A stretch of 63,436 bases of DNA, counting the filler, from Reticulomyxa filosa (lineage: Eukaryota > Protista > Foraminifera), in NCBI GenBank assembly GCA_000512085.1. It is 21 parts of 21 records of this genome, joined end to end, with 100 filler letters (N's around TTAATTAATTAA, not from the genome) between each part and the next. Parts side by side here need not be neighbours in the genome. Positions count along the whole stretch, not along the records: positions 2,411 to 9,411 come from ASPP01028076.1; 20 more parts are not named here. One strand, 5' to 3'. Within the stretch, counting starts at the first letter, position 1; each line of letters begins with the position of its first letter. The translations under genes and the position numbers were made by a program. Under the pieces are notes generated by a model. The model searched no databases. It worked only from the letters and a program-made list of their open reading frames with translations, and was not told the DNA's origin. This document shows positions 165 through 9,411 of the stretch, one piece after another.

Positions 165-1149
165 ACACAATGTCAATCATGCGGGAAAAAATAATAGATA
201 GTGTCAAACATTTTGGATGAATCGAAATTTGCGATTTGTTTTTTTACTTTGTTTTGCTTTTTTTACCATTTTCCTTGGGTGGTTTGTTCGTTCTTTAGTG
301 TACTCTTTTTTGTTTTGTTTCTTGTTCTTTTTCTTTCAAACACACAATTTTTAAATGGTTAACCATTTGCTATGTTTGAATACGAGTGAAAACAAAAATT
401 TTAAATGTACATGTTAAACTTTGAGTTTCCGTCGAAAAGGGCTGCATTGATTTCCATCAGACAAAGAATACATGAAAATGAGTCCAATTCTTTTAACAAT
501 AACAAATAATTAATTGGATCAACCACAGTTGGTGGGCTGAGATAAAAACATTAACAAGCCATTTTGATAAGTGTATGTCCTTTTACTGGAACAAAGCGAA
601 ACTATGTTAATAATAAAAGAAATTTTAATTGACAAAAACTAAAATAGATCACATTATATTAAATCTTGTATATCTACATTCGTTTAACATATCTTGTAAT
701 AGTTGGGTATACCTTTTTGTGCAATAATATTTTTCAAAAAAAGAAAGAGTCAAATTTATTAATAGTTTTTTAAATACAATTATGTACGTGATAGCACTCC
801 TTTCGTGTTCATCCACTTGCGGAGCATGGCCTTAAAGAAATTTACAGTTACTTTAAAAGCCAGTCATTTTGATTTTTCTTGAGAAAATAATCAAAGTTAG
901 CACAGTTCTCAGAAAAATCTTTGGTTAAGAAAAATACATTACGAATCAATTTTCTTAAATCCAACGTAACAGTAACTGACCTAAATAATATCATTTCTTA
1001 AAAGGGATTAGTTCCAGGTTTTTTTCTTCTCTTTTATGTGAGTATTTTCCAACAAATTACATCTTATGAAGATGATAAAAAAAAAATTCAGTTTTTTGTG
1101 AAACAAACTTTTTTACGTTTTCAGTGTAATATTTTTGATTATACTTAAA

Positions 1150-1640
1150 AGTATATTTAGTGTACAAGTGGATTGAATCATCAACAGAAATTTTGTAGAA
1201 GAACTTGGTGGGATATTGTAATCCTTTTGTTTATGCTTAAATATTGAATTATAATATCCAATTGTCCATTATTTAATTTTGGTGATATTATCCGGAGTAT
1301 TTTTGTACATGAGTTTTGGGCACTGTCATCACAATCAAATTATTTTTTGGACATGAATACATCATCTAGGTGATCAGTTAATTTCGATGATATTTTTTCG
1401 AGTATTGTTACCTTATAATCTTTATGATTGAGTTTTTCTTTTAAACTGGAAAACAAATTATTCGATTGCGTTTCATTCATGTTCGATGCCATTTCTTGAA
1501 GTACTTTCGCATATGAACAGCGAATATAAGTGTACTTATTATTTAATCACTTTAGTAAAAATTTAAATATGAGATTCATTTGTTGTTCATTCAACTTCGG
1601 TGTTGTTGATTCGAATATTTTCTCATATGAACGGTGGACA
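1150..1640 (-). pseudogene. Decayed HEAT-repeat-like gene fragment
   Basis: Minus-strand pieces such as IRCSYAKVLQEMASNMNETQSNNLFSSLKEKLNHKDYKV and PKLNEQQM resemble helical HEAT-type repeats, broken by stops and frameshifts. Confidence 0.4.
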
Positions 1641-2310
1641 TGATAATTTGTATAGTTAAATCCTTATTAAAGCAGATTATTTAATTGTGTTCAATCAAAT
1701 AATAATTCTTTTTCTGCGAGAGGTTTTTACATATAAAAAACAATTAATGCTGGTCTATTGGTTATTGACAAACTATGATAAAATTTGATTAGAGTTTTTG
1801 TGTTACATTAGAATTTTTTTGAAGAAAACACCATTATGCATAATATCTTCAGATCAGAAAGAAAAAGTTTTATGGTAGTTATTTGATGGATCATTTTTGA
1901 CCCAAATTTTTGTGTAATCTTAAATTTGAATGATAGTCAACCACAGATATTACAAAATCAAATTTTCTTTGTATCAAGTGTGTTTTGCTATTACAAATCT
2001 CTTCATAAACATTTTTTTCCAGATTCTAGTAACACAAGACAAAGAATTATATTATTTTTGTAATTCCAAAAACATTATCTAAAACAATTTTTTTAATTAA
2101 AAAAAGTGTAATATATGTACTTTTTTTTCTGTGCATTGATCACTTATTTATATAATCATTTTTTGAATCAATTTTATTGATTCAATTAAAAATCTCAAAC
2201 ATTAATCGAAGTATAAAAGTTTGTAAATGATATTTTCGACATAAAATATTCTTGTAAGTCAAATGGTTGATAAAATGTATATTGTATTGATTAAAATTTT
2301 GTTTATAGCC

Positions 2311-2410
2311 NNNNNNNNNNNNNNNNNNNNNNNNNNNNNNNNNNNNNNNNNNNNTTAATTAATTAANNNNNNNNNNNNNNNNNNNNNNNNNNNNNNNNNN
2401 NNNNNNNNNN
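2311..2410. other. Artificial contig spacer (44 N + TTAATTAATTAA + 44 N). Identical spacers start at 9412, 10953, 12778, 14631, 18792, 21269, 22479, 27107, 30602, 31770, 38040, 40499, 45215, 49642, 51684, 53767, 59246, 60346 and 62298.
   Basis: Twenty identical 100-nt blocks. The palindromic 12-mer puts stop codons in all six frames. Confidence 0.98.
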
Positions 2411-5400
2411 CCTGACATTTCCGGTTTTGACATTGCAACTTTTTTTTTTTTTGGTATGTGTAGTTTGATAATGATACCTTTTCCTCTCTATCAGTTTCAA
2501 TCTCTATTTCCATCTCTCTGAGTATATGTATAGTTTGAAACAGAAAATAAAAGTGTCAACCTTCAGTTGGAAGGGGATGTTCATTATGGGCAATGGTGAG
2601 TTGGATAGCATTTTCTTCGGGTTTTTTTGAGATGCTCTTGCTTTCGTTTGCCAGCGTGACACGACGATTGTGTAGGAAGACACGCCAGCTGTGGGAGATG
2701 TGTAGACACCACGGGATAAAGCGATAGACAGTGATGGCGACGATGACGAAGCACCAGGAAAAGATGACAATGTCGATAAGCAAGTTAAAAAACTGTGTAA
2801 AGATAGAGTAACGGATGACGTTCATTCTATCGTCGGTCCACTCTTTTGTGTCGTACATCAAAATGATGGTTTTGATGGCGCGATACACGGAGCACAAGCA
2901 AACGAGGAACATGAGCAAAAATACAAAGTCGACAAACACAAATACAAAATTGCGATAAGTGGAATAGCGCAATTGCCAATTGATTGGATCCTTCAGACTG
3001 CTCCACAGATTCTTGTATAGCGAATGTTGTCTCAGATCACGAATCAGCCAAGGGGTACGAATGATGGAGAACAGTGCGATGAAGCCTGTCACAAGTGCGA
3101 GAGCATCAAACACGGCCAAGGGCAAACTGACCAAGCAAGCAATTCTCCATTCCTCGTATTTATCATTTTGGTAGTCTTCTTTGAATGCCGTGAACGATCG
3201 TACAAATGGAACCAATCGTGTGAATGGACAAAGAATGACTGCAAGCAGACCCATCAAAAATGCAATCCAATCCATAAAGCCGGGGATGACATTGGATAAC
3301 AATGCCCATCGCAATGGGGAATCATATCGCAAATTCTCTCGAAACTGTCCAAATCTCTTTTTCTCGCCCTCTTCGCTGGTGTCATTCCACGCCGCCTTTA
3401 TCTCTTTCCACACATGGAAATAACGGCTCCACATGAAAACCAACGGCAATGCACAGAGGATGAACAGCCATTCCAAGCATGCAAACAACAAATTGCTCAG
3501 CATCAACACGCGCAAATCATAATAATCATCTTTTTTATAGGCATCCCAATTCACTCGAATAGCGCGCAGGAACGATGCCAAACGGAAGGGCATTATTACA
3601 ACGGACAATATACCCAACAGCAAGGCGATCAAATCCACGAAGCCAACCAATATGTTTGACAATAACTTGAGACGCAATTTTGTATTGTATTTCAAATCCT
3701 TTTCATAGTCACCGTATTTTTCCTTTTGAGCTGCCTCACTTTGATCACCGAAACTGCGTTTGATTTGATCGATCATGTGATAGTAACGTGTAAACATAAA
3801 CACCAACGGAATTGCACAAACAAAGAATATCCATTCGCAAATGGCGAACCACAAATTCATCACCAAAGCCTTTCGCAAGTTGTCGTAGTCATCTTTTTTA
3901 TAGCTTTCCCAATGCACTGAAATACTTCGAACAAAGGCAACCACTCGCAATGGCATTATCACCACTGCCAATATTCCAAACAACAAAACAAACCAATCCC
4001 CAATTCCTGGAAACAGATTCATCAAAATGCTCCAACGCAATGGAGAGTCGTATCTCAAGTCCTTGCTGTAGGCTCCATACTTGCGCTTTTGAGCCTCTTC
4101 ACTTTGATCTTTTATCGTCTCCTTTATCAAGCTGAAAATGTGATAGTATCGGGATGGTATCAACAATAATGGAATGGCACATAAAATGAACAGCCATTCG
4201 CAAATGGAAAATCCTACATTCACCATCAATGCCTCTCTCAGGTCATTGTATTGATCCTTTTTGTACGCTTCCCAATGCACTTTGAAACTTCGGAACAATG
4301 CCGCTAATCGAAATGGCATTATGACTACGGACATTATTCCACATAATAATGCAACCAAATCAAAAAGACCAGGGAGGAGATTCGATAATACTTCCCAACG
4401 CAGCACGGTGTCATATTTCAAGTCTTTGTAATAATAGCCAAAACGTTTCTTTTGCCCTTCTTCGGTGGTGTCATGAAGCGCTCGTTGAATGCATTTGATG
4501 ACATGGAAATATCGAGTGAACATAAAGAATAAGGGGAGGACCGCAAGAATGAAACAGCATTCGCAAATGGAATACCACAAATTGGTGAGCAATGCAAGAC
4601 GCAAATCATCATATTGATCCTTTTTGTAATTATCCCAATGCACATAAAAACATCGAAAGAAAGCCACCACTCGAAATGGCATTACAATCACAGAGAAAAT
4701 ACCAAATAATAAGATAACATAATCTAAGAGACCTGGAATAATATTTGCTAATAAACCCCAACGCAAAACAACATCATATCTCAATTCAATTGGATAATTT
4801 CCATATCTTTGTTTTTCATTTTCTGGAGTTGGTTTTATTCTTGCTTCTTGTATTCTTTTATACACATGATAATAACGACTGAATAGAATTAATAATGGTA
4901 ATGCAATAATAATAAATATCCATTCCAAAAGAGACAAAAATAAATTGGTAGTCAATGATATTCGTAAGTTAGAATAATTATCATTTTTGTATGCATCCCA
5001 ATGAACACGAATACATCGAATAAATGCTTTAAAACGCAAGGGCATAATCAATATAGACAATATTCCACAAAATAAAACAATCCAATCCAACAATCCAGGA
5101 AATATATCATATAAAATTGCTAAACGCAATTTTGTATCATATCTTAAAGTGACTCCATATTTTCCATATTTTATTTGATCATTATCTTCTTTCATTGCTT
5201 TTTGTATTTTTTTAACAATATGATAATATCGAGTAAACATTAATAATACAGGTATTGCAAGAATTATAAATATCCATTCATAACAAGCATATATCAAATT
5301 CAATAACATGGCCACACGAATAACAACATAATCATCATTTTTATATGATTGCCAATGAATATGAATTGTACGCACAAAGGCAAATAAACGAAAAGGCATA

Positions 5401-8241
5401 ATCACAACAGAGAGTATTCCACATAATAAAATGAACAAATCAAATATACCAAAATATACATTGGTCACAATCACCCAACGTAATTGTTTGTTATATCGCA
5501 AATCAAAGCGATATTTTCCATATTTTTGTTGTTCAATTTCATCATTTCCTTCCATCAAACTTTGTTTAATTTTTACATAAATGTGGAAATATCGACTAAA
5601 TGCAAATACTAATGTAATGGCATGAATAATCACAAGCCACTCACAACACGCAAATATCAGATTCATCACCAAAGCCTCTCTCAAATTACTGTATTTATCA
5701 TTTTTGTAATCGTCCCAATGAACATAAATACTTCGAAAGAAAGCCACCAATCGAAAAGGCATTACAATGATGGATAATATACCACATAGCAAAACGAACC
5801 AATCCAAAAAACCAGGGAATATATTTGACAATATTTCCCAACGCAAAGTAGTGTCATATCTCAAATCTTTCCGGAAACTTCCAAATCTTTTATTTTGACT
5901 TTCCTCATTGGTGTCATTCCAAGCCTCATTCACTTTTTTGAAAATGTGATAATGACGAGAGGGCATAAAGATCAGTGGAATGGCACAAAGAATAAACACC
6001 CATTCGCAAATGGCAAACAACAAATTCCTGAGCATGGCCGAGCGCAAGGCAACATACTGATCCTTTTTGTAATCATCCCAATGGACATAAAAACTTCGAA
6101 AGAAGGCGACTGCTCGAAGCGGCATAACAATCATGGACAAAATCCCACATAACAAAGCGAACCAATCTGCAAGGCCGGGACCAAAATTGGACAAAATGGT
6201 TACGCGCAATTGGCTATTATATCGTAAGTCCAAATTAAAATTTCTGTATTTTAATTGTTCTCCTTTGACACTTGTGTCATTGAGGGCCTCTCTCACTTGT
6301 TCGAAAATATGATAATAGCGACTGATCACAAGCACCAACGGAAAAGCGAAAAGGATGAATAGCCATTCGTAGCATGCACACCACAAATTCATCATCAATG
6401 CCAAGCGCAAGTTGAGATACTTATCGTTTTTGTATGCCTCCCAATGCACACGACATGTGCGAACGACAGCTATTACTCGAAGTGGCATTATCACCATCGA
6501 CAATATACCAAACAATAATGCAATCCAATCTGCAATCCCTGGGAATAGATTTGACAAAATATTCCATCGAATCTTGGAATTGTAGCCCAAATCAACGGCA
6601 ATATTGCCTCGTTCTCTTTCCATGTCTTTGCGTTGCCAATTCTGTTGGATCAATTTGGCAATGTGATAATATCGAGTGAGCATTATCAACAATGGAATTG
6701 CACAAATCACAAATAACCAATCACAAATACCAAACACTAAATTCATCATTAGAGCCTCTCGTAAGACATTATAGTTATCATTTTTATAGCTATCCCAATG
6801 AATGTAAAAACATCGACAAAAGGCCACCAGTCGAAATGGCATAATAACTACAGACAGTATCCCACATAGCAAAACAAACCAATCAAAAATTCCTGGACAC
6901 AGATTTGCCAGCAAATTCAAACGTATGGTCAAGTAGTATTTCAACTCGAGGGGATAAGGGTCAAGTCTTTTGTGTTGGTTCTGTTCGCTATTGTCAGTGA
7001 AGACAGTGTGGAGTAGTTTGTACATATGATAATAGCGAGTGATCATGATCAACAATGGAAGAGCGCAAATGACAAAGAGCCATTCTAAGAAGGCCATTAA
7101 CAAATTAATGAGTAATGCCAGACGCAGGTCCCCATAATTGTCTTCTTTATACGTCTTCCAGTGTTTTCGAAAGGCACGAACAAACCCAAATATACGAATC
7201 GGCATGACCACCACCGATAAAAATCCACAGCATAAAAACACCAAGTCAAACAGTCCAATCCATAGACAGCGTATTCCAACCAACCGATATTTGATATTGT
7301 ATCCCAATTGAGGATCTCCAAGATATTCTGGATTTTTCGATGCTTCTTTCCATTGCTTTTTTTTTTTTTTTGTGTGTATGTACACGTCACGTATAAAACA
7401 CATCTAATGTTAGTGTACGTGTGTAAAGTGAAAGAAACTTGAATAAAGTGGTAAGTGCGAGTGGGCATGAAAAATCCCAAAATGATCTGAGGAATTACAA
7501 AACAATCACCAACTCCCAACATCAAATTTGCAATCCAAAGTCCGCGCAAAGCATGGTAATCATCATTGATATAGTTTTGTGAATTCTTCGCACAAATTCT
7601 TTTTACATTGTTATTTATAATAATTATAAAAAAAAAAAAAAAAAAATTAATTAAATACATTTTGCATTTATACGTATCTATTATACACATATGTGTATGT
7701 ACACATATTCACATAGAAAGTGATAACTTGAAAAAAGCCAACGTTCGCGTTGGAAAGATCAAAGATAGCAAACCCCAGGGGAGGGTAACCAAGTCCAAAA
7801 GGCCTTGACCAATGTTCTTCCACATACCGAATCGCAATTCATACAGGTAAAACAAATCCGAATTTTCACCTTCGTGTGTAAATGCATTGTAATAACATTT
7901 GAAAAAATGAAAGATTCGCGTTGGGATACACAGAGACATTAGTCCTACTGGAATTGTTATTATGTCAAATAGCGACAATCCAAGCTGTCTCACTGCATTT
8001 ACTCGAAATTTTTCCCTGTTTTTTTATTGTCTTTTTTTGATCAGTCATTAATCTTTTTTTTCTTTTTTTTTTTTTGCACTTACATGCTTTCGCATTTGCT
8101 GAGACACTGACATATACCCACAGTTCGCCATATGGCCAAACAGGCCAGAAGCAGAGACGCAAAGCACAAGATATTTAGCGTCCAAATAAAAACAAACTTT
8201 ATCAAACGTCCCAACAAACCCAAAAAACTCTTGGAATTCAT
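2411..8241 (-). CDS. Giant tandem-repeat polytopic membrane protein (>1800 aa, probably 3' partial), uncharacterised
   Basis: Phase-consistent model: exons 8241-8084, 8015-7728, 7598-7439, 7355-2561 and 2438-2411, all GT-AG introns with phases 2,2,0,1. Starts MNSKSFLGLLGRLIKFVFIWTLNILCFASLLLACLAIWRT. About 30 [D/E]-15/16 hydrophobic-R modules. Confidence 0.85.
3290..7260 (-). repeat. Coding tandem repeat, 11 units of 363 nt (121 aa); two units are 354 nt
   Basis: The Met-Pro anchor (GGCAT on +) recurs at 3589, 3952, 4315, 4678, 5041, 5395, 5758, 6121, 6484, 6838 and 7201. Confidence 0.95.
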
Positions 8242-8646
8242 TGGACATGTTTTTTTCTATTTTTTTGGTCGACGCTCGATTTTAAAATAATCACTCCGTA
8301 GAAAAGGATCCCTTCAAAACGTGCAAATTTTTTGGGGTCACTTGTTTCTTTTTCTTTTGCATAATGATAATTCGCACTATTAATACATCAAAGTTCAAAA
8401 CGAAACATTCAACAATGTTTGCAATGACACAACTGGCTTAATTTTTATAACATTTAGAAAAGAGTATCCAAAACATATCATTGAAAGTAGGCCCTTCCTT
8501 GTGGACAAGAGCAGTGACAATGTAGTACAAATGAATATATCGCAGCTTTGTCAAAGAGATGAACATTCCAAAACAAAAAAAACGAAAGCAGTGTTGTTTT
8601 GAACTTTTGAAGCGATTGGTACCACAATTGAAACTTGATATTGATA

Positions 8647-9369
8647 ATGAGATTATTGCTATTGTTAGCATGGGTTCTAGTATTGCTCTTGAATATTGTC
8701 AGCGGCTTTACTGCAAATACGTACTGTAACCTAATATATTTTCAAACGCAATGTTCCAGTTCAATGAACTGTTATATTGAAGCATTGTTTGGAGGGTGTA
8801 TGTTTCAAAAGATCTTTTGCCCACTGTCGAACATGTATGATTGCGAGATATACTGCGGAGATCAAGGATGTCGTTACACGCAAATCCATGGAGGACAGGC
8901 ACGTACGCTGAGATTGTACTGTTACGGAGCGCATAGCTGTGAATCAATGACAGTGTTCGCAAATAAGTCGTCGAATGTGATTATCGAAGTGGTGAACCTG
9001 CATTCCTTCCGCAGCTCTTCGGTGGTGCTGTCCGGCGAGGCATCAACGAACGTCATAGTCACGCCTTATCCAAGCATGCAAGTTAGCGTGCCAGCACTTG
9101 GACAATCGGAATACTTTGCGATGAATAGCATTTACTTTTCGTCGATGAGAAGCGATCCTACGACAGCTGCAGGAGTGATCAACCTGACATGTGCTGCAAA
9201 CGCGTCTACAGGGGCGACTAACCATTGCGCACAGTTGGGGATTAATGTCACACAAAGCAAGCAGTTGTACTTTACATGCAAAGACGCAGGTCAATGCATT
9301 CAGAACACGTTCTGGTGTCCGAACCCTTCTTCCAGTTCCCCTTCAGTTATATTATGTAGTACGCTGAAT

Positions 9370-9406
<37 letters not shown>

Positions 9407-9411
9407 CCCCC
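8647..9411 (+). CDS. Secreted cysteine-rich protein (3' partial), head-to-head with the repeat gene
   Basis: Signal-peptide-like MRLLLLLAWVLVLLLNIVSG followed by regularly spaced Cys (C.I.C....C, L.L.C.G..SC). Runs into an intronic poly-T at the contig end. Confidence 0.75.

Follow-up and report, generated by a model that had tools for sequence, protein, structure and literature searches.

The window analysed here, a 63,436-nt stretch of Reticulomyxa filosa DNA, includes at positions 2,411-9,411 the contig ASPP01028076.1, which is present as the whole 7,001-bp contig and not as an excerpt. We report that the minus strand of this contig carries a gene that is truncated and belongs to a protist family of wider occurrence, and that this gene encodes an undescribed membrane repeat that is under selection and has a confident yet unmatched predicted fold; to this extent we regard the finding as real. 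The best explanation of our observations is that its product corresponds to the N-terminal half of a multi-pass membrane protein of ~3,100-3,700 amino acids (aa), from a protist family that is uncharacterised. More tentatively, at a probability of about 0.4, we infer by analogy that the repeats form a leaflet-embedded rod, which would serve the multi-pass protein as a scaffold that imposes or senses curvature.

A single frame without a stop codon was found on the minus strand from 7403 to 2556. Reading upstream of this frame in all three frames gave further exons of compatible phase, the first of them opening at 8241 or 8248, separated by AT-rich GT-AG introns. The frame is kept across all four introns, the number proposed in the first-pass annotation of this DNA, and the positions of introns 1-3 are identical in a paralog contig, L002, in which the intron interiors have diverged. 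The features of the gene are these:

8084-8248, minus strand: exon 1; start codon probably at 8248; first module, with N replacing D
8016-8083, minus strand: intron 1, 68 nt, GT-AG; L002 has a donor at the matching position
7728-8015, minus strand: exon 2; two diverged modules; the NCBI model omits part of it
7599-7727, minus strand: intron 2, 129 nt; matching position in L002
7439-7598, minus strand: exon 3; one diverged module
7356-7438, minus strand: intron 3, 83 nt; matching position in L002
2561-7355, minus strand: exon 4, 4,795 nt, stop-free; 26 modules and a variable linker
3291-7265, minus strand: array of eleven A+B units, 118-121 aa per unit
2680-3290, minus strand: four diverged post-array modules, each with a positional counterpart in contig L003 and in Nonionella
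2439-2560, minus strand: intron 4, 122 nt; A-run acceptor as in introns 1-3
2411-2438, minus strand: start of exon 5, cut at the contig edge; leads into the next module, in register with the L003 exon at 1425

The conserved N-terminus of the L002, Nonionella and Bolivina proteins (P0004, P0005, P0007, P0009) is present from the ATG at 8248, interrupted solely by one T too many in a homopolymer run (T6, 8227-8222). To judge from these sequences, the start codon is probably ATG 8248, and the surplus T is probably a homopolymer or assembly slip; the alternative is a true frameshift, with use of the in-frame ATG at 8241. The public record for this contig, ETO05484.1 (X6LV52), a model of 1,738 aa labelled 'F-box domain containing protein', can now be corrected in three respects: it is mis-spliced at its 5' end, where intron sequence is translated as protein; its stop codon, 2558-2556, lies inside intron 4; and the F-box name is unsupported. 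We found no Pfam F-box match in exons 1-4, in the relatives, or in their tail alone, at E values up to 10. The likeness to F-box proteins lies in the database name only, and a short C-terminal stretch of the relatives, which falls beyond the contig edge, is F-box-like by eye only.

Between 8241 and the contig edge there are 1,809 codons. The claim in the first-pass annotation that the product is almost entirely repeat reflects the position of the contig edge, since the Nonionella relatives carry a further 1,320-1,870 aa from the corresponding point: 2-4 additional modules, then ~200 aa of soluble insert, followed by a helical region, ~12 additional hydrophobic segments and a cytosolic tail. 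The 28 bases beyond intron 4 are in register with the L003 exon that opens the next module (17 of 28 nt identical, with EMS at an equal offset), a match that is short and is equalled in score at one other place in L003. That contig continues into a region matching residues 384-988 of Nonionella P0004 (E 4e-86). Because of the intron 4 acceptor, the 28 bases in L003 register and this continuation into P0004-like sequence, the gene very probably extends beyond the contig edge. The array would then be only about half of the full protein, and the C-terminal half may hold the activity. No family match was found for the C-terminal half of the relatives in Pfam or among PDB sequences, and a profile comparison of the repeat unit with the C-terminal region gave no match. 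A predicted structure of this region, for which the alignment was too shallow, was poor (predicted local distance difference test, pLDDT, 42) and yielded no structural match. In P0005 (~1400-1440) and P0020 (~1290-1340), an optional Cys-rich, zinc-finger-like insert was seen among the C-terminal membrane segments; it gave PF25080 at E 0.004, below the cut-off, and is absent from P0004. P0020 also has an additional C-terminal domain (1950-2216).

The repeat itself was examined as a series of 30 modules of the form D/E-x15/16-R, each ~54 residues long, with one in exon 1 (N for D), two in exon 2, one in exon 3 and 26 in exon 4. The two-part repeat described in the first-pass annotation is real: 22 of the 30 modules make up the eleven A/B units, and the other eight are diverged halves. 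The units are 43-60% identical to a reference unit, with 16 invariant columns, and 51-72% identical at the DNA level; between units, the proportion of nonsynonymous differences (pN) is 0.29 against a synonymous proportion (pS) of 0.65. From these values, the sequence argues that the array is old, is under purifying selection and is no assembly echo. Over 91 family modules, the constants are R-13 (92%), N-7 (67%), D/E0, G+7, P+14 and R+16; the acid at position 0 was found in 91 of 91 modules, which is partly a product of how the set was selected. The hydrophobic run had been put at only 15-16 residues, a figure that is too short, for positions -6 to -1 are hydrophobic too, giving an apolar span of ~22 residues, from N-7 to R+16, that includes a single Asp. 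Mean Kyte-Doolittle values for the module helix are 2.0-2.6. In the window protein and in most relatives, N replaces D in the first module, the one that lacks an upstream partner.

We scanned 1.84 billion representatives in full with a unit profile (HMMER) and obtained 18 matches, comprising Reticulomyxa paralogs, Nonionella and Bolivina proteins, foraminifera-like metagenome fragments, the protein P0011, a fragment designated P0016, and two false matches, P0015 (frog mesothelin-like) and P0017, to which the module profile gives no score or a negative one. The foraminiferan relatives (Nonionella stella P0004/P0019, P0005 and P0020; Bolivina argentea P0007 and P0009; R. filosa RFI_06027 and RFI_31010) share the N-terminus, the module and the order of post-array modules with the window protein, but have 9-11 modules ahead of the soluble domain (P0004 10, P0005 11, P0020 9), as compared with 30 or more in the window protein; none is characterised. 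Relatives from EukProt, on which our reading of expression rests, we take to be transcriptome-derived. P0011 (Logan contig L004, 487-4722) is a protein of 1,411 aa with 22 modules, ~17 of them consecutive and of a single 53-54 aa type. P0016 comes from a 76-kb intron-bearing metagenome contig, whose locus contains three super-repeats, each of about 1,000 aa, alongside another gene in tandem. With a profile built without these two, P0011 scored 308 bits and the P0016 locus 41 bits, and locally shuffled controls scored below -8; support for P0016 is thus weaker than for P0011. This arrangement, on L005 (328-10147) and L010 (~1000-4800), is eukaryotic with short introns; the three super-repeats, built from the module, belong to one gene, and neither that gene nor its tandem neighbour has a detectable match to the foraminiferan C-terminus. 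The module is found in other eukaryotes besides the net-forming amoeba Reticulomyxa, and the connection to reticulopodial networks raised in the first-pass annotation is speculative. Pattern scans of prokaryote, viral and metagenome contigs gave no relative. Word-index protein searches, an insensitive method that missed known relatives, returned foraminiferan relatives only. In the literature we found no paper that names these accessions or describes such a repeat.

In a module tree built on 51 columns, in which many forks are open, the Reticulomyxa paralogs form one cluster by their A halves (99/91), separate from Nonionella, and another by their B halves (100/99), which takes in a single long branch from Nonionella. 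The P0011 modules lie for the most part outside both clusters, and a cluster of their own has no firm support. Because the A and B halves of the paralogs cluster in this way, the tree indicates that growth of the A/B array took place in the Reticulomyxa line, either before its paralogs or across them, and that other lineages expanded the module separately and in other ways.

The first-pass annotation had recognised no known family, and this holds for the searches made here. The exons of the window and the relatives gave nothing significant against Pfam; NCBIfam, PDB sequences and the ESM Atlas searched by features likewise gave nothing significant. Comparison of a three-unit AlphaFold2 model with PDB and BFVD by Foldseek, and with the ESM Atlas by shape, gave nothing above noise. 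Several specific candidates were rejected. The YccF inner-membrane hairpin repeat, a possible likeness, matched none of the eleven units at E up to 1. There was no Pfam match for the blade domains of Piezo, and no structural match; reticulon, REEP and caveolin also had no Pfam match. Among 48,161 chains, no alpha-solenoid (HEAT/ARM/TPR or designed) reached Z 8, and designed repeats did not exceed Z 5.3, although the lack of a match in such a comparison is no proof. A bridge-like lipid transfer protein requires a repeating beta-groove, and the model has no strands. One paralog, P0002, matched 7tm_1 at 52 bits, above the cut-off, over model positions 153-247 only; we read this partial match to rhodopsin-like G-protein-coupled receptors as a composition effect, the window exon giving none and the fold being different. 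On the evidence of these searches and models, we consider the repeat family and its predicted fold new, a claim that does not extend to mechanism.

The AlphaFold2 model of three units, made with 22 aligned rows, had a pLDDT of 88 (85-88 in five models) and a predicted template modelling score of 0.68. All six modules in it share one helix pattern: a long helix running from about R-13 to P+15, then a P-x-R or T-R kink, a shorter amphipathic helix and a charged loop. N-7, G-3, D0 and G+7 cluster on one face of the helix, within 60 degrees, and residues on the other side are hydrophobic from -9 to +13; this arrangement, a hydrophobic face opposite a conserved polar stripe, together with the Kyte-Doolittle values, bears out the membrane character suggested earlier. 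Single three-helix bundles aligned to model residues 258-320, from the anchor acid at 257 to past the next, at 311. The best multi-module alignments were with designed Protein A shared-helix repeats (5h7a/5h7b; described in PMC5454011), of which a five-module form aligned to 17-312 and a four-module form to 68-312, one module per half-unit, followed by the EzrA (4uy3) and BB0323 (6rjw) rods; the bundle edges fall at the anchor acids. The secondary structure and the aligned ranges fit a spectrin-like rod, in which a continuous helix links three-helix bundles into a chain. These rod-type alignments scored Z 5.4-6.4, which is at noise level, and natural solenoids were absent from the top structural matches listed. 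The rods also differ from the Reticulomyxa protein in being soluble and only 5-7% identical, and the long helix of the latter is hydrophobic all round. Despite their noise-level scores, we consider the alignments informative on the register of the predicted helices.

In the arrangement that we propose, each three-helix bundle would combine the second half of a long helix with the amphipathic helix after it and with the first half of the long helix that follows, such that neighbouring modules would share a helix and the array would make a rod. R-13, N-7, D0, G+7 and R+16 would staple adjacent modules, with R+16 near D0 of the next module and R-13 near the previous one; the structural role suggested in the first-pass annotation for the invariant Asp and Arg is, we infer, supported. 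The fully hydrophobic opposite face would lie in the cytosolic leaflet, with both loop types cytosolic. At ~21-22 Å per module the arm would measure 60-80 nm if straight, its length tuned by repeat number (9-11 modules in Nonionella, 30 or more in Reticulomyxa). Such a scaffold might displace the leaflet, impose or sense curvature, and position the C-terminal multi-pass domain. Reticulon and REEP proteins work in a monotopic, leaflet-displacing mode. The caveolin-1 8S complex is monotopic, with a hydrophobic face that displaces the leaflet and favours curvature (PMC11383982). The likeness to these systems is one of proposed mode alone, as they have no sequence or fold match to the repeat; caveolin and reticulon are small oligomerising subunits, whereas in the window protein a single chain would carry the whole array as part of a multi-pass protein.

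Evidence on topology comes from three sources. In P0011, odd and even modules do not alternate (p 0.82, 17 modules); the loops of the window protein are net basic after A (+2.4) and after B (+3.1); and relatives differ by single modules in front of downstream domains that they share, metagenome contig L007 having one extra. A single membrane crossing per module would make neighbours face opposite ways, and these three observations argue against it. They suggest instead that the two ends of each module lie on one and the same side of the membrane, and a rod in one leaflet with cytosolic loops fits a helix that is polar on one face and hydrophobic on the other. The 3' part of L007 (2958-3758) is inverted with respect to the gene, probably through mis-assembly.

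Several points weigh against the leaflet rod. The 22 residues from N-7 to R+16, with one Asp, are long enough for a normal transmembrane helix, and an N-D-T sequon occurs in three of the eleven B loops. Mis-assembled transcripts or skipped exons could account for some of the single-module differences, and L007 is partly inverted. The structural matches are all at noise level (best overall Z 6.4-6.7; root-mean-square deviation 9-10 Å for multi-module alignments), and the rod geometry and membrane depth are putative. The first two of these points would favour a transmembrane array, in which every long helix would cross the bilayer, burying an Asp-Arg pair, and the modules would stack into a solenoid, arc or ring that works as a pore or transporter. 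The best 19-residue Kyte-Doolittle values (2.1-2.8) suit such an array, as does the strict A/B alternation in Reticulomyxa (odd/even p 0.0005 in the window protein). However, odd gains or losses of modules would flip the downstream domains, P0011 lacks alternation, and the A and B loops are both basic. No solenoid or channel fold was found at Z 8 or above, and the solenoid or ring envisaged in the first-pass annotation gives way to shared-helix rods as the best, if noise-level, multi-module alignments. We regard a transmembrane array as unlikely.

A mechanosensor, in which the in-membrane arm would be a lever passing curvature or tension to a conducting or signalling C-terminal domain, is to our minds unlikely. 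Piezo has long N-terminal membrane repeats, in four-transmembrane-helix units, ahead of a C-terminal membrane domain, and the relatives have a comparable layout of N-terminal membrane repeats, soluble domains, ~12 hydrophobic segments and a cytosolic tail; repeat number also varies widely among them. This analogy is one of layout only. The window protein has no Pfam or fold match to Piezo; OSCA/TMEM63 and TRP family matches are likewise lacking, the C-terminal model is unusable, and L005/L010 carries modules without a detectable match to the foraminiferan C-terminus. A bolder combination, in which a new fold makes a single-chain leaflet rod whose length (9 to over 30 modules, enlarged independently in several protist lines) sets the curvature or tension sensed by the C-terminal domain, as a Piezo-like mechanosensor or membrane-shaping machine with no kinship to known ones, is unlikely.

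Lipid handling is distinctly unlikely, whether by a superhelix with a hydrophobic groove that bridges contact sites or by a coat on a monolayer or lipid droplet. A continuous hydrophobic face with same-side topology would suit a monolayer, and length variation would suit the spanning of gaps, but known lipid bridge proteins are built of repeating beta-grooves and the Reticulomyxa model is all-alpha. That the array was inflated by assembly, or that the gene is a pseudogene broken at the T-run, is very improbable. The one-base frameshift near the start, and near-identical tracts shared with L003, could be so read, but the DNA identity of the units is too low for collapsed or duplicated reads, no stop interrupts 4.8 kb of sequence, pN is well under pS, the introns are conserved in the paralog, and ATG 8241 would be available in frame even were the surplus T real. 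The conduit for metal or protons lined by His, as envisaged earlier, is hardly credible, for although the His is conserved at 90-100% within the Reticulomyxa A and B halves, its offsets differ (A +28, B +19), it reaches at most 26% in any column over the 91 family modules, and it is thus lineage-specific.

Two tracts within the array are shared with L003:

6621-6893, minus strand: part of unit 2; 93% identical to L003 81-353 (other units 51-72%)
4391-4450, minus strand: end of unit 8; 59 of 60 nt identical to L003 1-60

In L003 the match to the end of unit 8 directly precedes the unit 2-like tract, forming a mosaic (1-353) that suggests recent exchange between paralogs by gene conversion, or else a chimeric contig or assembly. 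Within exon 4, the GC content falls to 26-30% at ~4600-5600, and third-position GC ranges from 0.17 to 0.60 among units. Elsewhere on the contig, a divergently oriented open reading frame at 8635-9369 on the plus strand (at least 244 aa, a signal peptide-like start, 16 Cys) enters a T36 tract at the contig end and has no Pfam or NCBIfam match.

Membrane-embedded tandem repeats are rarer than soluble ones, and the ~54-residue module described here folds confidently in silico and is unmatched in the libraries searched. If the same-side rod is true, it would join caveolin discs and reticulon wedges as a third design for a long scaffold embedded in a leaflet, and the natural length variants of the family would make the relation of length to curvature directly testable.

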